From the IMG/VR virus record IMGVR_UViG_3300044972_002389, positions 186,001 through 250,000 of that record: a stretch of DNA of 64,000 nucleotides. The stretch is one strand, 5' to 3'. Below are positions 3,040 to 39,641 of the stretch, one piece after another. How positions within the stretch are numbered: the stretch's first letter is position 1; each line of letters begins with the position of its first letter. The translations under genes were made by a program, and so were the position numbers. Under the pieces are notes generated by a model. The model saw only the letters and a program-made list of their open reading frames with translations, made no database searches and was not told where the DNA came from.

Positions 3040-3392
3040 GCAAGCCCAATGCTAGAGACCGGCGCACTGTTGAACGTCGTCGTGATCTTGACCAATACAG
3101 CGGACCTTACCGTCTAGAGGACCTACCTGAGCTGCAACATGGTGCTGTATTGGTTCTTGACAGCTGGTATGATGAAACCTCAGTGTATCTTGCCTGGGAA
3201 GAGCTAGAGAGTGAGGAAGAGTGGAGGGCTCGAGTCAAAAAGCTCGATGCGGCTGCTGCTCGTCGCGCCCAGAATCCCACACCACGCAAAAGCAAGGAGC
3301 AGAGGCTGCTGGAGCAGGCTCGCCAAAAGCTCACGCCAGAAGAGTTGGCTGCCTTGGTTCGAGATGCCAGGAATAGCTTGACAATGTCCTAA
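3036..3392 (+). CDS. hypothetical protein
   Basis: ATGA overlap and AAGGA RBS; start shortened from 2871. Confidence 0.65.
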   Translation: MSKPNARDRRTVERRRDLDQYSGPYRLEDLPELQHGAVLVLDSWYDETSVYLAWEELESEEEWRARVKKLDAAAARRAQNPTPRKSKEQRLLEQARQKLTPEELAALVRDARNSLTMS

Positions 3393-4449: not shown

Positions 4450-4704
4450 ATGAAATGGGAATGGACTCTGTCCGTAGTTGCTGAGCGTGATGCCTCAGGC
4501 AAGCGTCGTCGACTTGAGGAGCATGAGACAGCCGTGGAGGTGCAAGATGGTGGACAGGCACAGCTTGTGGAGTTTGCAAACACCAGTGAGACCGGGCTGT
4601 TTGTGCGCTTGCAGAGCTGGGATGATCAGCGCGAGCATACCGAAATGGCTCAGTTGCTGAACAAGCGAGTGCGAGTCACTGTGGAGGTGCTGGACGATGA
4701 ATGA
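4450..4704 (+). CDS. hypothetical protein
   Basis: Tightly packed ORF in the operon. Confidence 0.6.
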   Translation: MKWEWTLSVVAERDASGKRRRLEEHETAVEVQDGGQAQLVEFANTSETGLFVRLQSWDDQREHTEMAQLLNKRVRVTVEVLDDE

Positions 4705-6570: not shown

Positions 6571-6813
6571 ATGATAGCCACCATCACACTTTGGACCATG
6601 CTGCTGTGGGCCGAATCTCGAGCATCCAGCAGTTCCTTGGAATCTACCCAGATAAATGGGTTTGCGACCCAAGAGGCGTGTTTGACCGCCCTGGCACAAA
6701 TCACCGGGATCAACAAGCGTCTCCAAAATGAGAGAGGGAGTGCAAGGTCAGGCGAGACTGGTGTGGACTTCAAGCTGACGATGTGCATTCCTGTCGAAAC
6801 TCCCAAGAGTTGA
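6571..6813 (+). CDS. hypothetical protein with N-terminal hydrophobic segment
   Basis: AGGA RBS; F.T.EAC...CIP pattern. Confidence 0.6.
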   Translation: MIATITLWTMLLWAESRASSSSLESTQINGFATQEACLTALAQITGINKRLQNERGSARSGETGVDFKLTMCIPVETPKS

Positions 6814-6825
6814 TGGAGACAGCAA

Positions 6826-6987
6826 ATGTGGGACGAAGAGCTTAGGAAGTTTGTGGGTCGCACTGTGGAGAGCATCACTCGCTATGGTGATGAGTATCTC
6901 GAGATTCGCTTTGATGATGGCACCTGTCTCACTGTGGGCTCTCGGGGCAGTGAGGAAAGTTGGCTGGATGTAGATTCTTTGGGTTGA
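6826..6987 (+). CDS. small hypothetical protein (not in ORF track; paralog of 5076-5231)
   Basis: GGAG RBS; MWDEELRKFVGRTVESITRYGDEYLEIRFDDGTCLTVGSRGSEESWLDVDSLG. Confidence 0.7.
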   Translation: MWDEELRKFVGRTVESITRYGDEYLEIRFDDGTCLTVGSRGSEESWLDVDSLG

Positions 6988-7011
6988 CCCCTGCTCAAAC
7001 CCTGCTATAGT
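6984..7011 (+). promoter_or_regulatory. early sigma70-type promoter
   Basis: TTGACC-16 bp-TATAGT with TGC extension. Confidence 0.75.
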
Positions 7012-7038
7012 GTGGTTGCAAGAGAGGAGACCGCAGAC

Positions 7039-7290
7039 ATGATGAGGGCTGTGAAAGCGTTGATGGGCTGGCGTAAGGTGGTTAATGACAGCCTTACAGA
7101 TGTGTCGTTTGGGTCAAACGGTGGAGGCGAGTGGATGGCACAGGAACTGCTCTCCATGTCAGACGCTGACCGTATCGCCCTTGCTGCCGAACTGCTGGCA
7201 GGGACGGGATACGAGACCCGGCGTACGGAGCGTGCAGGCTCTGATGTGGCGGATTTTTTGCTGTGCGGCGCTTCAATGAAGAGGGAGTAG
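7039..7290 (+). CDS. hypothetical protein
   Basis: GAGGAG RBS before ATG 7039. Confidence 0.6.
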   Translation: MMRAVKALMGWRKVVNDSLTDVSFGSNGGGEWMAQELLSMSDADRIALAAELLAGTGYETRRTERAGSDVADFLLCGASMKRE

Positions 7291-32915: not shown

Positions 32916-33947
32916 ATGACTATCAATCTAGACAATGTTGATTTTTCAAAAGTAATTGCCATAACTGATGTGCATTTTGGCATGCGGAACAACTCCAAAC
33001 AGCACAACACTTGGTGTACTGAGTTTTTGGAGTTTGTGGTCAAACGAGCACAAGAGCTGAAAATCAAAACACTCTTGTTTTTGGGCGACTGGAGTCACAA
33101 CCGCAACAGTGTGAACATCAGCACACTCAATTACAGCCACAATGGCATGAAACTGCTAAACAACAATTTTGACAATGTGATAATGCTCTTGGGCAACCAT
33201 GATCTCTATTTTCGAGATACTCTAGAGCTGCACAGTATTCCCTATGCACAGGATTTTTCAAATATTCACCTAATTGACAAAATCACCACAGTCAAAGACT
33301 ATTGTTTTGTTCCTTGGTTGGTGGGTGATGAGTATAAGTTGATTCAAAAAATCAAACAGCCTTATTTGTTTTGTCATGCTGAAATTGCCAAGTTCCGGAT
33401 GAATGCCATGGTGGAAATGCCCGATCATGGCGGCTTGAACAGTGAACACTTTCAAAATCAAAAATTGGTGTTCAGTGGGCATTTTCACAAAAGGCAGCGA
33501 AAGGGCAACATTTGTTATATTGGCAATGCCTTTCCTCACAACTTTGCAGATGCGGGAGACGATGATAGAGGGTTGATGATCTGGACTCCTGGAACTGATC
33601 CCATATTTGAAAAATGGCTTAGTGCACCCAAGTATCGCACGTATAACCTTACAGAGGCACTTCAGGATCCTACCGGCTTGATAGACAACAAAACTTTCGC
33701 ACGGATAACAGTAGATGCTGACTTAACTTATGAAGACCTTGCCTTCATTAGAGAGTTATTTGAAACTCAGCTAGCTGCCTTGGATGTGAGTTTTATTCAT
33801 GGCAGAAGTGATGGAGATGACACTGTTCTTGATGATAGTGAAATCAATTTTGAAAGCGTTGACTCAATTGTGGTGTCACATTTGAATAGTATTGAAAGCA
33901 CTACAATGAACAAACAACGCTTGATTGAAATCTATCAGAGTATTTGA
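32916..33947 (+). CDS. recombination endonuclease subunit (T4 gp47 / SbcD / Mre11-like)
   Basis: TDVHFG, LGDW, GNHD, FSGHFH metallophosphoesterase motifs. Confidence 0.92.
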   Translation: MTINLDNVDFSKVIAITDVHFGMRNNSKQHNTWCTEFLEFVVKRAQELKIKTLLFLGDWSHNRNSVNISTLNYSHNGMKLLNNNFDNVIMLLGNHDLYFRDTLELHSIPYAQDFSNIHLIDKITTVKDYCFVPWLVGDEYKLIQKIKQPYLFCHAEIAKFRMNAMVEMPDHGGLNSEHFQNQKLVFSGHFHKRQRKGNICYIGNAFPHNFADAGDDDRGLMIWTPGTDPIFEKWLSAPKYRTYNLTEALQDPTGLIDNKTFARITVDADLTYEDLAFIRELFETQLAALDVSFIHGRSDGDDTVLDDSEINFESVDSIVVSHLNSIESTTMNKQRLIEIYQSI

Positions 33948-35725
33948 ACTTGATCATCCTCAAAAACGTCACAATCAAAAACTTCATGAGTGTGGGTGCT
34001 GTTACACAATCAGTTACTCTCACACAACCTGGCTTGACTCTTGTATTGGGCGAGAATCTAGACTTGGGCGGCAACGGCAACCGGAATGGTGTTGGCAAAT
34101 CGACGCTGATTTCAGCCATTTGTTATGCCCTGTATGGTCAAGCTCTTACTAACATCAAGAAAAACAATCTCATCAACAGCATCAACAAAAAGAACATGGT
34201 GGTGAGTATTGAGTTTGAAGCCCACGGCAACAGCTACAAAATTGAACGTGGCCGTGCCCCTAGTTTTTTCCGCTATGTTGTAAATGATGAATCAGTAAAT
34301 GAAAACAAAAGTGCAGACGAAGCTCAAGGCGAAAACAAAGATACTCAGAAAGAGATTGAGAAGGTATTGGGCATCAGCCACACCATGTTCAAACACATTG
34401 TGGCTTTGAACACCTATACTGAGCCATTTTTGAGCATGGGTGCTGGAAAACAGCGAGAAATAATTGAAGAGCTGTTGGGAATTACATTACTGTCTCAGAA
34501 GGCAGAAAACCTCAAAAAGCTTATTCAAACAACCAAACAAACTATTGAACAAGAAGAGTTCAAAATACATACTATCAAAAACAGCAATACACGTATTTTG
34601 AGCACTATTGAAAGTTTGAATCAAAAAACCCAACAGTGGGATACTCAACATCAGAACAAAATTCAAGACTTGGAAAATGCACTAGATGCTTTGAGTCATC
34701 TTGATGTTGAGCAGGAAATTCAAAGTCACAAAGACAATCTTGTGTATCGTGAACTTCAAACAGCATTGAAGAATGTGCGCAGCCAAAGCCAAACAAAAAC
34801 ACAGCATGGAACACAGCTGAAGGCGCAACAAAACAACTGGTTAACTCAGTATAGTCAAATTCAAGACCACAACTGCGCAATGTGTGGTCAAAAGATTCAT
34901 GACGAGAAACAAACACATCTGCTGGACGACCTTGAGCACAAAATTACCAAACTGGACAGCAGCATTCAAACACTGGAACAGGAATGCCTGAGTTTGACAC
35001 AAGAACTGGATGAGCTCATGGGTCTGTCTAGTGCTGTATCGCTAAACCAAACATTTTACAAAAGCATTGATGAGGCATATGAGCATCGAAACAGTCTCAC
35101 ACTTCTTAGTGGTGAACTGGACAAACTTAAGCTTGAAACCAATCCTTATCAAGCCCAAGTGGGTAATTTAAATGACACACTGCAAGAAGTCACTTATGAT
35201 TCACTAAATGAACTCAGCCAACTCAAAGACCATCAAGAGTTTCTCTTGAAGCTGCTAACAAACAAAGACAGCTTCATCCGAAAGCGTATTATTGATCAAA
35301 ACCTCAGCTACTTGAATCACAGACTGGGTGAATATCTAGCTGGATTGATGTTGCCACACCAAGTTAAATTCAGCAACGACTTGGGAGTTGAGATCATGCA
35401 TATGGGCGTAGACTTTGACTTTGACAGTCTCAGCCGAGGTGAACGCACAAGAGTTTGTTTGGCACTCAGCTGGGCATTCCGAGACATTTTTGAAAACATG
35501 AACACCAGCATCAACTTCATGGCTGTTGATGAGATCCTTGATGTGGGACTTGACAGCACAGGACTTGAAAGATCTCTAGAGACGCTTAAGGCTATGAGCA
35601 GAGATCGGAACAAGAACATTTTGTTGATCTCACATAGAGAAGAGCTAACAAGTCGCTGCGATCGAGTTTTGTATGTTATCAAAGAGTTAGGTTTCACTCG
35701 TTTCAGCTATGAAAGCGGTGAGTAA
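33944..35725 (+). CDS. recombination ATPase subunit (T4 gp46 / SbcC / Rad50-like)
   Basis: NGVGKST Walker A, CAMCGQ zinc hook, LSRGE signature, VDE Walker B, ISH. Confidence 0.93.
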   Translation: MNLIILKNVTIKNFMSVGAVTQSVTLTQPGLTLVLGENLDLGGNGNRNGVGKSTLISAICYALYGQALTNIKKNNLINSINKKNMVVSIEFEAHGNSYKIERGRAPSFFRYVVNDESVNENKSADEAQGENKDTQKEIEKVLGISHTMFKHIVALNTYTEPFLSMGAGKQREIIEELLGITLLSQKAENLKKLIQTTKQTIEQEEFKIHTIKNSNTRILSTIESLNQKTQQWDTQHQNKIQDLENALDALSHLDVEQEIQSHKDNLVYRELQTALKNVRSQSQTKTQHGTQLKAQQNNWLTQYSQIQDHNCAMCGQKIHDEKQTHLLDDLEHKITKLDSSIQTLEQECLSLTQELDELMGLSSAVSLNQTFYKSIDEAYEHRNSLTLLSGELDKLKLETNPYQAQVGNLNDTLQEVTYDSLNELSQLKDHQEFLLKLLTNKDSFIRKRIIDQNLSYLNHRLGEYLAGLMLPHQVKFSNDLGVEIMHMGVDFDFDSLSRGERTRVCLALSWAFRDIFENMNTSINFMAVDEILDVGLDSTGLERSLETLKAMSRDRNKNILLISHREELTSRCDRVLYVIKELGFTRFSYESGE

Positions 35726-35810
35726 TTATCTGTACTCCATAAATATAGATATATGCCGGTCACGACCCTGGCAGGTCCACCGGCTCTATCGCTTTAAGGG
35801 AGCAACAGCT

Positions 35811-36635
35811 ATGTCTATTTATCGTAATATCAAACCCTTTGGGTTTTATGTGTATGCCTACTTAAGAAAAACAACATCCAACAATGGTCCTGCAGGAACC
35901 CCTTATTATATTGGAAAAGGGACCGGCATACGTTACAAAGAAAACCACGGAACTCTACCTGTACCAAAAGAAGCATGGAGGATTGTTGTCCTTGAACAAG
36001 GATTAACTAATCTTGGTGCTGTTGCGCTCGAAAGAAGGCTGATACTCTGGTGGGGACGCCTGGATAATAACACAGGTATATTACACAATCGAACTGATGG
36101 CGGGGATGGGGCAGTTGGGAAGATAGTCTCTGATGAATCAAGAATGAAAGCAAGTGTTAACAATTGTGGCAAAAAAAGAAGTGCAGAAACAATCAAGAAC
36201 ATAAAAGATGCATTATCTCTTATCGACAGGTCAGGAGAGAATCATCCGTTATATGGCAAAAAGCATTCTGATGAAGCTAGATCTAAAATGAGCGAAGCTA
36301 AAAAAGGCAGGTCCTATGAAGAAATTTATGGCCCAAAAGCAGAAGAGATGCGAGCTGCACGCTCACAAAAATCTCGGGGACGAAGTCTGTCTGCTGAGAC
36401 CAAAGAAAAGATAAGTTTAGCAAATCGAGGCAAGAAAAAACCTGCAGGCTTTGGAGTCCGAATGTCCGCAGTAAGGTCTGGCCAAAAAGTCTCTGAAGAA
36501 ATTTTGAAGAAGAGAGCACAGATATTCGAAGCAACAAAACAAACTTGTGAACATTGCGGGAATATCTTTGGTTTAGCGAACTATATCAGATGGCATGGTC
36601 CTAATTGCAAAACTCAACCTAACCAACTACTATAG
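35811..36635 (+). CDS. GIY-YIG homing endonuclease with NUMOD3 repeats (Seg-like)
   Basis: FYVYAYLR...PYYIGKG..R, L.N.TDGGDG, GKKHSDEARSKMS; GGGAG RBS before ATG 35811; TAAATA at 35740. Confidence 0.88.
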   Translation: MSIYRNIKPFGFYVYAYLRKTTSNNGPAGTPYYIGKGTGIRYKENHGTLPVPKEAWRIVVLEQGLTNLGAVALERRLILWWGRLDNNTGILHNRTDGGDGAVGKIVSDESRMKASVNNCGKKRSAETIKNIKDALSLIDRSGENHPLYGKKHSDEARSKMSEAKKGRSYEEIYGPKAEEMRAARSQKSRGRSLSAETKEKISLANRGKKKPAGFGVRMSAVRSGQKVSEEILKKRAQIFEATKQTCEHCGNIFGLANYIRWHGPNCKTQPNQLL

Positions 36636-36650
36636 GCGATTCGATTGGGA

Positions 36651-37166
36651 TTATACACCAGCAGTATAACTCAGTTCAGCAATCTTCAGCTTGTTTTGTT
36701 CAAAAAATGGCTCAAACTCTGTTATTACAAAGGTTTTGTAACGTGCGTGGTTTTCAACCGTGAAGTCAGCCAAATGTTTTTGATCAAAACAAGCATAACT
36801 TCCTTTGTGATTGATGCGTATGACAACAAACCACAAATCTTCTGGATCACATGTGTCAAGTGTTTGCTCTATCCAAGCATCCAGTTGTTTGATATCTCCA
36901 TTGCACATGAGTCGATGCCACGGAAAGTCTTGATAAAACTTACTTTCAATCACCAGCTTTTTCATATGGGAAGGTGGAATGAGATCACTTTTGAAGTAGC
37001 TGATTTGCGTAGCATCCATAGTGTCTTTTCTCTTGGTGTTTGCTCCTCCAATGAAGGCACCAGAATTAGGAACCCTAATAAATTTGGCTTCATATAACGT
37101 TGTGAGAAACTTGGCTATCCGTAATTCGCCTGCATTTCCTTTTGCCTTGCCTTTGGACCCTGCCAT
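36651..37166 (-). CDS. Holliday junction resolvase (Hjc-like PD-(D/E)xK)
   Basis: K.KG...E..IA..L, RVPNSGA, SDL, IESKFY motifs. Confidence 0.75.
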   Translation of the reverse strand: MAGSKGKAKGNAGELRIAKFLTTLYEAKFIRVPNSGAFIGGANTKRKDTMDATQISYFKSDLIPPSHMKKLVIESKFYQDFPWHRLMCNGDIKQLDAWIEQTLDTCDPEDLWFVVIRINHKGSYACFDQKHLADFTVENHARYKTFVITEFEPFFEQNKLKIAELSYTAGV

Positions 37167-37205: not shown

Positions 37206-37234
37206 TTGATTTTATAGTTTTAGATGGCTATAAT
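37206..37234 (+). promoter_or_regulatory. sigma70-type promoter for the TnpB-like gene
   Basis: TTGATT-17 bp-TATAAT with GC extension. Confidence 0.65.
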
Positions 37235-37258
37235 CAAAATAACAAAAGAGCATTTCAA

Positions 37259-38068
37259 ATGAAGCACAACAAGCCACAACACCGCAGCATTTTTATTGTA
37301 GTTGATCCAGTAGATCAAAATCGGCTCAATAGTTTTTTCCGACAAGAGTTGGGATTTTACAATACCCTTGTAGGAACCTTTGGAAGTCGTGTAAGAGCAT
37401 TTCCACAAACTATTCTCAACATCACACACGATCAAGCATCACTCTTTTGTGATCTAGCCAAATACAATCTCAACATTCGCGAATTGGTGAAAAAGCCTCA
37501 AGAATGGCCTGAACAACTGAAAAGTTATTTTCCAGTTGCTTTTGACAGACTCACACAAAAAACAATTTTGACCGAAGCGCAAATTATGATGTTTGAATCT
37601 GCCGGAGCCAATCGCTGGATTATGATTCCAGAAGCCAAAAAACAGATGGCTAGAGCAGTTATTGATTTTTACAAAGAGCAAGCAGACATTTTGGCTCATC
37701 CCCAATCAAGCGATATAATTGAGGTGGCTTACAAGACACCACCCAGCAGCTTGAGTGAGTTGGAAATCAGCAACAAACGTCATGCACAGATCCCTCGTAA
37801 TGAAATCAAATACAAATACAACAACACTGAACAACATACAGAAATTTGGACTCCGTTAACTACAAAACCCATTATTATTCCGCATTTTAACCTTAACGAA
37901 TACAATCGATGGACAACAGCAATAGTCAAGCAAGAGAGTGGTAGATTCTGTGAATACAACACACCTTGGGTAATTGACTTCAAAAATACAAAAAACAATT
38001 ATCTTTTGAAATATCTAGACAGCACAGCACGTAGTCCAGGCAATTATAGAATCAGCAACTACGCATAA
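37259..38068 (+). CDS. 269-aa protein resembling the TnpB/Cas12f WED-REC half, with no RuvC domain
   Basis: N-terminal RSIFIVVDP.DQNRL..FF...LGFYN.LV, mid helix ARAVIDFY...YKTPP, beta-rich IWTP...TAIVKQ.SG...WVIDF; ends where RuvC-I would start. The ORF is solid, the family call is tentative. Confidence 0.55.
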   Translation: MKHNKPQHRSIFIVVDPVDQNRLNSFFRQELGFYNTLVGTFGSRVRAFPQTILNITHDQASLFCDLAKYNLNIRELVKKPQEWPEQLKSYFPVAFDRLTQKTILTEAQIMMFESAGANRWIMIPEAKKQMARAVIDFYKEQADILAHPQSSDIIEVAYKTPPSSLSELEISNKRHAQIPRNEIKYKYNNTEQHTEIWTPLTTKPIIIPHFNLNEYNRWTTAIVKQESGRFCEYNTPWVIDFKNTKNNYLLKYLDSTARSPGNYRISNYA

Positions 38069-38090
38069 CAGAGTATATTTTTAAAACATA

Positions 38091-38454
38091 GTGGCTTTAT
38101 ATGATGGTGTAGTGTCCATCCGTATCTACCAGGCGCGAAGGCCGGGGAAAATTGCGTATGAGGGTTTACGGTTCTATGCCCTCGCCACAAAAGTGAACAA
38201 AAAGGATCCAGCCTCTCACTGTCCCGTGACGCTGGAAGGGGTTCAGTCAACAGCCTGTCTGACTGAATTCCCTGCGTGTGTGATGAGCACATAACCGAGA
38301 AGGCAGCTCCATGAGCATAAGTCCGAGAAGAGAGTCAGGAACGCTGGAAATAGGTTCTCCGCCAGCTGGAAGCAATTCCCAAGACGAGACAGGCAGGCCG
38401 AAGCCCTATACGAAAGCCTTTTCACACTTCTCCTCCCGGTGGGGAGAAGTGTGA
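38091..38454 (+). ncRNA. candidate structured non-coding RNA (~365 nt) with pseudoknot
   Basis: At least six complementary stems, a loop-to-distal 8-bp pairing (38253-38260 with 38387-38394) and a terminal 12-bp stem (38422-38454); GC-rich island with no credible ORF; strand is assumed. Confidence 0.65.
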
Positions 38455-38574
38455 CTTCCTCCCTAACGAAATACCCAGAACTATTATCAGTCCAACAAGT
38501 ATCCTATTCCAGATCCAATAATATCATCAATAAGATCATTGAGATTCATACTAGATCACGCCCAGCTAAAATTA

Positions 38575-38820
38575 TCACTTCTTTGATTGAGCCTTCCTAT
38601 AAGCTTCGGCTTGCATCTCATAGTGTTTGGAAATAGTTCCACTCAAAGATTTCATCTGTGAAGTGGTGAGACGCCAAGCTTCACTGTAGGTGAGTCCTCC
38701 GTTCATGTAATACACTAGGTTGGCAATATCGCTTTCAATCATTTCCACTTCTTTTTCGCAGCTTCTCAGTACTTGGGTGATGGCTACATGATCACCCCTG
38801 AGAAGCTTTAGTCGAAAAAA
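38575..38820 (-). CDS. gp51-like baseplate/tail assembly ORF, probably the -1 frameshift extension of the upstream gene (not in ORF track)
   Basis: Open -1 frame FFRLKLLRGD...EMIESDIANLVYYMNGGLTYSEAWRLT...KAQSKK*. Confidence 0.75.
   Translation of the reverse strand, partial: FFRLKLLRGDHVAITQVLRSCEKEVEMIESDIANLVYYMNGGLTYSEAWRLTTSQMKSLSGTISKHYEMQAEAYRKAQSKK
38760..38820 (-). other. programmed -1 ribosomal frameshift signal
   Basis: T TTT TTC heptamer (38820-38814), 6-nt spacer, then a 10+7 bp stem-loop (38807-38760). Confidence 0.75.
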
Positions 38821-39641
38821 CTTGTGGGATCAAAGTCAATTGACTGGCTCCAAGTGTGTGAGCAACCGTCGCATTGAAAAGAGGTTTCGGTATCAATACC
38901 AGTTTTGTTGAGCTCTTTCAACTTGTCGATGATGGCGTTGGCACTGGTTGTGGGAATACCTTTCACAAACTCTTGAATGTATTCTTGATTGGTGACCAGT
39001 TCACCACTACTGATTATTTTGATTTCAGTTATGCTCATGGCCATGATGTCCAATGTGCGTTTGGCCATGTGATTCACTTGTTTGGTCACACTACTGATCT
39101 TTTCTGCATCAGTTGTGTCTGTTTCTTGTAACACTTTGATGCTTCTGGCTTGTTCCACTTCATTCAACAGTTGTAGATTTCTCTGCTCAAAGTTGTAAGG
39201 ACGCAGGAAAACTTGGAGTGCTCCATCTATTTCAATATAGGTGGGGCCTTCAACATAAGTTTGTGTTTCGATAAATGCAGAGAGGTCTATACCAAAGTTG
39301 TGCTCTTTTCCACAACTGGGACATGTGGTGTCTATTTCCATAGTTGACCCTGCACTGGCAATTCTTATGGCAACAAGTAGGGTGTTGATGTCAGGCTCCA
39401 CAAGCTTCTTGGGATCTTTGACTCCAGGAACACAGTTTCGGAAAACACTCAACAATGCATCGCCATTCAACAGCGCATCAGGAGTTTTCAACATGATTTG
39501 ATCAATAGCAGTCAACGGATACACTGCCATTTCGCCATTGGCTGAAGTCTCAAGGAAATCACTAGGATAAAATTTGCCTCGTGTTGGCAATTGTGCATAG
39601 GCCTTGGGTGTGTGAAAGTATTGACTCAATGGATTACTCAT
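38808..39641 (-). CDS. baseplate hub assembly / tail chaperone (T4 gp26-like)
   Basis: NPL..YF..P..Y..LPT.G.FY, KTPDALLNG, LVAIRIAS, CPSC...C..C, FDPTSFF end. Confidence 0.8.
   Translation of the reverse strand: MSNPLSQYFHTPKAYAQLPTRGKFYPSDFLETSANGEMAVYPLTAIDQIMLKTPDALLNGDALLSVFRNCVPGVKDPKKLVEPDINTLLVAIRIASAGSTMEIDTTCPSCGKEHNFGIDLSAFIETQTYVEGPTYIEIDGALQVFLRPYNFEQRNLQLLNEVEQARSIKVLQETDTTDAEKISSVTKQVNHMAKRTLDIMAMSITEIKIISSGELVTNQEYIQEFVKGIPTTSANAIIDKLKELNKTGIDTETSFQCDGCSHTWSQSIDFDPTSFFD

Follow-up and report, generated by a model that had tools for sequence, protein, structure and literature searches.

Exaptation of TnpB, as seen in Cas12, Cas12k, TldR and sigma-associated dCas12f, is an active research area, and to our knowledge some portion of the RuvC lobe has been retained in all TnpB derivatives described so far. 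Among phage-carried RNAs, GOLLD and ROOL are several hundred nucleotides (nt) long, covary extensively and have no known biochemical role. TldRs are TnpB-like nuclease-dead repressors that are partly prophage-encoded (bioRxiv 10.1101/2023.11.30.569447), and inactivated TnpB/Cas12f exaptations have been catalogued (PMC10691335). Some TldRs lack the ZnF (zinc finger)/RuvC segment at their C-terminus, and their guides are short, match host promoters and are associated with a target-adjacent motif (TAM) (bioRxiv 10.1101/2023.11.30.569447). TldRs and inactivated TnpBs are reported to keep the remaining TnpB fold and to be detectable by sequence as TnpB homologs (bioRxiv 10.1101/2023.11.30.569447; PMC10691335). 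Here, a locus of a T4-like jumbo phage was analysed, in which an open reading frame (ORF) of 269 amino acids (aa), TnpBL, at 37259-38068 on the + strand (ATG at 37259, stop codon at 38066-38068) is followed on the same strand by a structured non-coding RNA of about 390 nt. The window, i.e. the whole stretch of DNA that was analysed, comprises 64 kb (C1:186001-250000 of a 328,603-bp IMG/VR virus record), and all coordinates refer to it if not stated differently. Structure prediction showed the ORF product to be a TnpB/Cas12-like WED-REC module without RuvC or TNB, which is best read, at the level of the model, as the domesticated remnant of an RNA-guided nuclease of the TnpB/Cas12 type. A literature search found no description of a WED-REC-only family or of the RNA.

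The ORF represents a real gene family, for which 15 close homologs with 42-100% identity to the window protein were recovered from metagenomes. In total, the metagenomic family comprises 170 clusters at 50% identity. The lengths are almost all between 234 and 345 aa, and essentially no member is long enough for a RuvC lobe. Searches of 50,697 deposited phage genomes by blastn and tblastn, with the window protein and two distant members as queries, gave no match, and judged by these searches the family is known only from metagenomes. For all 59 aligned members no Pfam family was matched at E≤0.01, and PHROG was likewise without a match. The PDB sequence search returned nothing better than E=0.057, and that match was unrelated. 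PF12323 had no match in genome G000, and a feature search of the ESM Atlas with the protein gave uninformative scores below 0.9.

A preliminary description of the locus had proposed by eye that the protein follows the WED-REC order of TnpB/Cas12f, and this remote similarity was borne out by the predicted fold. The AlphaFold2 model, which was generated from the 59-sequence alignment (predicted local distance difference test (pLDDT) 89.6, predicted template modelling score (pTM) 0.86), consists of one N-terminal strand, a helical block at residues 17-146 and six strands at residues 175-242. Comparison with the PDB by Foldseek ranked Cas12f, Cas12n, Cas12p, Cas12k, TnpB and Fanzor at the top, with weak E-values of 0.008-0.5 and TM-scores of 0.3-0.43. 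Among the AlphaFold DB clusters the top matches were IS605 OrfB/TnpB transposases (probability 0.99), and in the viral library BFVD two members of the family itself were followed by giant-virus TnpB/Fanzor proteins. Alignment of the Foldseek matches with VIA-align yielded Z-scores of 9.3-10.1 over 160-172 residues, with model residues 3-243 corresponding to residues 1-173 of ISDra2 TnpB, its WED and REC part. The decisive control was a VIA-align comparison with 48,161 PDB representative chains without Foldseek prefiltering. In this comparison, all 28 chains at ranks 1-28 were Cas12, TnpB or Fanzor, with Z-scores from 9.8 down to 5.3, and the first unrelated chain followed at a Z-score of 4.9.

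The model stops directly after the last WED strand (residue 269), at the point where RuvC-I would start, as had been read from the sequence before. RuvC (PF01385) and TnpA (PF01797) are absent from the 328.6-kb phage record, and the TNB zinc ribbon (PF07282) was found neither in the protein nor in the record, while the positive controls were matched in the control genomes. The protein gene and the RNA are each present in a single copy in the record, and the gene is syntenic among relatives, in line with the earlier remark that tnpA and insertion sequence (IS) ends are missing. Because RuvC, TNB, TnpA and any match at the sequence level are all absent, the protein is not classed as a TnpB nuclease or a transposon gene. 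It would retain only the WED domain (a split beta-barrel) and the helical REC domain, with the entire RuvC/zinc-finger half gone. All 59 aligned members are basic, with an isoelectric point (pI) of 8.8-9.9.

The likeness to TnpB of IS200/IS605 and IS607 elements and to Cas12f thus comprises the N-terminal WED-REC fold (Z-scores of 9.5-10.1 over 160-170 residues) and, with regard to TnpB-omegaRNA loci, the basic protein and the structured RNA that follows the gene at its 3' side without a change of strand. However, the window protein has no RuvC domain, no DED triad, no TNB zinc ribbon and no detectable sequence similarity, and the locus lacks TnpA and IS ends and is single-copy and syntenic instead of mobile. 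Moreover, the RNA begins after the stop codon and not inside the gene as in omegaRNAs, and a guide was not found. With TldRs the locus shares a phage-borne, immobilised, nuclease-free TnpB derivative with an adjoining non-coding RNA. It differs from them in that the protein is missing the entire RuvC half and has no detectable sequence similarity, the phage is T4-like and jumbo and not temperate, and the RNA is of far greater size, is present in protein-less phages as well and has no target that could be found by the searches performed.

The preliminary description had also assigned to the ORF its own sigma70-type promoter. A sigma70-like site (TTGATT-17-TATAAT, 10/12 consensus matches) is located at 37206-37234 (+ strand) in the divergent intergenic region common to the ORF and a resolvase gene. 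The count of sigma70-like sites in this region shows no excess over shuffles. Nevertheless, relatives with proteins of only 43-89% identity have this site at the same place and with a conserved sequence (TTTGATTTT...TATAATCAAA), and both hexamers are conserved in the related loci L008, L013, L007, L011 and L001. From this conservation we infer that the site serves as the promoter of the ORF, from which the host RNA polymerase would probably transcribe the gene. In the region ahead of the RNA, a scan for sigma70-like sites recognised no separate promoter, and the ORF transcript most likely continues into the RNA. As a separate observation, the promoter region 37206-37240 is palindromic (TTTGATTTT ... 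TATAATCAAAA). Since the resolvase gene diverges from the same 92-nt spacer, this region could be an operator common to the resolvase and the ORF.

The RNA extends on the + strand from about 38087 to about 38478, as delimited by conservation and covariation, and starts about 20 nt after the stop codon of the ORF. The region had first been described as 365 nt of non-coding, densely base-paired sequence that begins within about 25 nt of the ORF and ends at 38454. Its non-coding and structured nature and the short gap were confirmed, but the gap was corrected to about 20 nt and the conserved RNA, with about 390 nt, ends about 25 nt further downstream. The G+C content is 0.51-0.54 in the RNA region versus about 0.37-0.40 around it. 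Variable columns are distributed over the three codon phases as 58/54/67 (p=0.48) in the RNA region, compared to 150/108/233 (p=2e-11) in the ORF, and nucleotide conservation is higher in the RNA than in the ORF (e.g. 92% versus 73% in L013). The lack of codon phase, together with indels, led to the rejection of the possibility that the RNA region is coding.

Folding of the downstream region as a single sequence gave a z-score of -2.7 only, while an alignment of close relatives supported 94 predicted pairs, of which 21 showed compensatory changes. Distant copies of the RNA were gathered by a degenerate pattern scan of metagenomes followed by nhmmer. For 16 diverged homologs RNAalifold predicted 38 consensus pairs in seven helices, in which 95% of the cells are canonical. 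Double compensatory changes occur in 21 of the 38 pairs, with 52 extra pair types, in keeping with the dense base pairing noted previously. In controls with partners slid by 1-3 columns, only 42-49% of the cells were canonical and 7-12 pairs had double changes, and none of 300 shuffles reached the observed pairing value. G-U cells outnumber A-C cells by 44 to 7, and therefore the RNA is placed on the + strand.

In Rfam 15, the window RNA had only a sub-threshold match to PtaRNA1 on the opposite strand at E≤1, and eight related loci had no match at gathering scores. ARAGORN detected no tmRNA and no tRNA in the RNA region. Inspection by eye additionally led to the rejection of transfer-messenger RNA (tmRNA), RNase P and introns of groups I and II, and a 14-mer scan of viral contigs gave chance matches only. 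Because it has no match in Rfam 15 and is no tRNA or tmRNA, the RNA is regarded, as far as such comparisons go, as a new structured RNA family of giant phages. As a large, covarying, phage-borne structured RNA it resembles GOLLD, ROOL and HEARO (the IscB omegaRNA), from which it is distinguished by the missing Rfam 15 match and by its fixed syntenic position in T4-like phages, with the gp46/resolvase block on one side and the baseplate-hub gene on the other.

Taking protein and RNA together, we tentatively favour the reading that the protein binds the approximately 390-nt RNA and forms a nuclease-free ribonucleoprotein (RNP), because of the fold, the basic pI and the arrangement of the locus, where gene and RNA share a strand and the RNA adjoins the 3' end of the gene, which is also the case for tnpB-omegaRNA and tldR-guide RNA (gRNA) loci. 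The basic WED-REC protein would bind nucleic acid without cutting, its preferred ligand would be the RNA encoded in cis, and the outcome would be a nuclease-free RNP that is encoded among the recombination/replication genes of this T4-like jumbo phage. Co-transcription of ORF and RNA, binding of the RNA by the protein and any downstream activity are presumed in this reading.

Several elements of the RNA (all on the + strand) are defined by the alignment. The 5' domain (38091-38188) is closed by helix P1, in which GUGGC at 38091-38095 pairs with GCCAC at 38184-38188. P1 occurs in the variants GUGGC, UUGGC, CCAGU and CCUAU with matching partners (columns 8-12 with 114-118). The single-stranded core motif CAUAACCGAG (38290-38299) is invariant in 18/18 aligned RNAs. 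It is followed by a hairpin GCUGG...CCAGC (38343-38366, columns 284-288 with 304-308) with the conserved loop AAAUAGGUUCUCCG, and by a terminal hairpin (38423-38455, columns 415-423 with 429-437, with compensatory changes) that carries an invariant GGGAG in its 3' arm. The invariant unpaired motifs CAUAACCGAG, AAAGGAU, the GGYWCUCCGCC loop and GGGAG point to a specific tertiary fold or to specific ligands. The hairpin at 38343-38366 has a loop that matches, as its complement, the 3' arm of the terminal hairpin (95/96 cells, two covarying positions), while covariation also supports pairing of this 3' arm with its own 5' arm. Because the same arm has two covarying pairings, the alignment suggests two exclusive conformations, between which the RNA may switch at the GGGAG arm.

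Such a pair of exclusive conformations would also suit a 3' element that belongs to the upstream operon and would act in cis, as a stabiliser, as a barrier to convergent transcription or as a conformational switch, without a function in trans and without a TnpB-type partner. The RNA is located where the + strand early block meets the - strand baseplate genes, and tandem hairpins follow its type C copies, i.e. the RNAs of loci without the protein, both of which would be in line with such a role. However, about 390 nt and the invariant single-stranded motifs far exceed the needs of a terminator or stabiliser, no U-tract terminator is present 3' of the RNA in the window and there is no conserved downstream ORF to regulate, so that a purely cis-acting element is considered highly improbable.

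Two further observations were made at the 3' end. In most family members, GGGAG is followed about 4 nt downstream by GUG or AUG (38441-38453 in the window), resembling a sequestered ribosome binding site. The frames that follow differ in sequence and length, from fewer than 10 to more than 60 codons. The tandem hairpins are two conserved hairpins just 3' of type C RNAs, in L226 at about 4600-4700 (- strand of that locus), in L233 and in others. An example reads GUUAGAUGAGCUUUAGCUCAGCUAAC, followed by UGAUGAGCU..AGCUCAUCA. They may be bidirectional terminators and are absent after the window RNA.

The terminal hairpin is flanked by a direct repeat of 10-12 nt, with an internal copy at 38404-38416 (CCCUAUACGAAAG) and a tail copy at 38461-38471 (CCUAACGAAAU), a few bases after which the conserved RNA sequence stops. 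The two copies co-vary, i.e. they change in parallel between lineages. No complementary partner of the repeat was found inside the RNA, in the loci or in the phage genome. Both a duplicated site for a single protein and a trans-pairing segment present in two copies would fit the repeat. The latter is what would be expected if the RNA were a guide, as in full RNA-guided, nuclease-free targeting similar to TldR or Cas12k, in which part of the RNA would pair with a target, either DNA or RNA, and the protein would hold the duplex. This would lead to repression or activation of transcription, to an R-loop seeded at an origin or to recruitment of the neighbouring resolvase. The fold and the layout of the locus are in line with this alternative as well.

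The searches for a guide and its targets point the other way. Neither a variable 3' guide, which had been anticipated, nor a hypervariable 5' segment was recognised among the homologs, and the candidate segment is not hypervariable but shared by close relatives. Tail, leader and whole RNA gave chance-level matches only in the 328.6-kb record, the repeat was without a match beyond chance there, and tail, leader and repeat had nothing beyond chance in the neighbouring loci. In 596 Gb of species genomes, the tail 18-mer had 6 exact matches compared to about 17 expected by chance according to our own estimate. The six matches lie in unrelated taxa, none of them beside the RNA. Guide targets in phage and host genomes were thus not found, neither in the phage genome nor above chance level in the 18-mer scan of species genomes. 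In addition, phages that lack the protein have the RNA, which would function there on its own. RNA-guided targeting is therefore considered unlikely. The same small likelihood is given to the more specific proposal that a TnpB descendant with WED and REC only and the RNA form a nuclease-free RNA-guided binder, in which the co-varying repeats would be guide-like trans-pairing segments and which would act on DNA or RNA in recombination-dependent replication or in the control of gene expression. It is speculation that the system would guide the resolvase or contribute to the formation of origins or R-loops.

The favoured RNP reading was further weighed by the linkage of protein and RNA across relatives. 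In seven lineages, namely the groups of L008, L013, L007, L011, L004 and L136 and the window itself, the RNA is present within about 20 nt 3' of the ORF on the same strand, with proteins 37-89% identical to that of the window. The synteny of resolvase, ORF and RNA that had been put forward for checking is thus kept in these lineages, but seven others keep the RNA without the protein. The latter and the following results weigh against an RNP of the two. The seven other lineages have a homologous RNA at the same locus and no WED-REC ORF there, which does not support the RNA as guide or partner of the protein, as first proposed. The source record of L226, one of these, is a complete genome of 518,643 bp with terminal repeats, in which the RNA is present (131 bits with model R1) and neither of the protein profiles A2 and A4 has a match, compared to 1.8e-106 for A2 in the window's own genome. 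The RNA homologs fall into two sequence groups that are split by the presence of the protein, which is consistent with one gain or loss event of the protein. Because of this one event and the frozen gene order, the adjacency has little statistical weight. The window RNA is, moreover, about twice as long as the known omegaRNAs of TnpB. Downstream of the distant protein homologs L134, L234 and L001 long ORF-free stretches are present, in which the RNA was not detected by covariance model R1 or nhmmer, nor in L134 and L234 by BLAST. Finally, the two sequencing runs that were examined for expression are probably DNA and of very low depth.

RNA and protein are therefore separable in nature, and because relatives keep the RNA without the protein, the RNA is, judged by this distribution, an autonomous functional RNA of the phage lineage. 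Accordingly, the strongest alternative to the RNP is that the two are neighbours and not partners. The RNA would then either be self-sufficient, as a machine or scaffold made of RNA alone, or work with a different protein. Independently of it, the WED-REC protein would bind DNA or some other RNA during recombination or replication, and the adjacency would reflect a frozen T4-like gene order. The protein-less lineages, among them the complete genome, speak for this alternative. In their loci the order is gp47, gp46, resolvase (+), an ORF of 113-126 aa that is rich in lysine (+), the RNA (+) and the hub gene (-), so that an unrelated small protein precedes the RNA. This protein is predicted to have a disordered N-terminus and three helices and no WED-REC fold. 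As a candidate relative of the family, the 115-aa protein of the protein-less phages was rejected, since profile comparison finds no relation. Furthermore, the most constant neighbour of the WED-REC protein is the divergent resolvase (PDDEXK_15 or Endonuclease VII), and no detectably homologous RNA lies downstream of its distant homologs. On the other hand, in every solved relative among the 48,161 chains WED and REC hold the guide RNA scaffold and the RNA-DNA duplex, and the same strand, the spacing of about 20 nt and the lack of a promoter in between constitute a tnpB-omegaRNA-like arrangement. The neighbours alternative is consequently a serious possibility, although it is ranked below the RNP.

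Further observations were made at the related loci. The ORF-free stretches after the distant homologs in L234 (6889-8012, +) and L134 (2685-3770, +) are about 1.1 kb long and rich in hairpins, and end with a final hairpin and a GUGUGAC-like tail that by eye resemble the 3' end of the window RNA. They may be a second, larger RNA type. RNA homology after L134, L234 and L001 is not claimed, despite the similar-looking 3' hairpin, as no search detects it. Inside the stretch of L134, a sub-threshold match to Rfam EGFOA at 3215-3324 (+; 30.3 bits compared to a gathering score of 37.7, E=0.064) could be due to chance. Public gene calls exist on the minus strand over the RNA of L136 (6047-6244, 65 aa) and at the P0185 locus where the RNA is expected (6807-7061, 84 aa). 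Both are likely false genes, because the RNA sequence is rich in G+C and poor in stop codons.

With regard to the genomic setting, the ORF was said to lie among gp47, gp46 and a resolvase gene, which was confirmed, and relatives have the same order of gp47, gp46, resolvase, ORF, RNA and baseplate hub. The gp47-like gene (32916-33947) and the gp46-like gene (33944-35725) are located upstream. A GIY-YIG/NUMOD3 homing endonuclease gene of the Seg-like type (35709-36635, +) lies between gp46 and the resolvase gene. It is not found at that position in the relatives L007 and L008 and looks like a recent mobile insertion. In L136, a SegE-type gene lies directly upstream of the TnpB-like ORF. The putative Holliday-junction resolvase (36651-37166, -) is of the PDDEXK_15/RusA-like type (Pfam PF24608, E=5.5e-18; phrog_244), and is divergent from the ORF. 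Relatives keep it in synteny, and in L134 Endonuclease VII takes its place. Downstream, about 740 nt separate the ORF from the stop codon of the T4 baseplate-hub gene (38808-39641, -), which is followed by a 774-aa ORF (+) that is gp29-like by position only. The space between RNA and hub gene is filled by a 57-aa ORF (38575-38748, -) just downstream of the hub gene. This small ORF has no Pfam or PHROG match. Genes of 45-76 aa are called at the equivalent place in relatives, and a YYMNGG-type stretch is kept in L001, L004 and L007. Apart from this locus, intein-splicing domain matches (PF14890) were noticed in the portal (gp20-like) genes of L011 (10629-12822) and L136 (10213-10849).

On its own, the RNA is a new and well-supported structured class. 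Its unusual features are a direct repeat whose copies co-vary and two covarying pairings that exclude each other. The locus is a testable case for whether a WED-REC protein still uses RNA, and the relatives that have the RNA without the protein are built-in controls. Should the RNA-guided binder prove true, it would be the first RNA-guided system derived from the RuvC-less half of TnpB and the first one in the core module of a lytic T4-like phage. The WED-REC family would moreover define a very small candidate scaffold (about 270 aa) for programmable binding. If the family of 170 clusters keeps only WED and REC, the half of TnpB that holds the RNA and the duplex would be selectable on its own.

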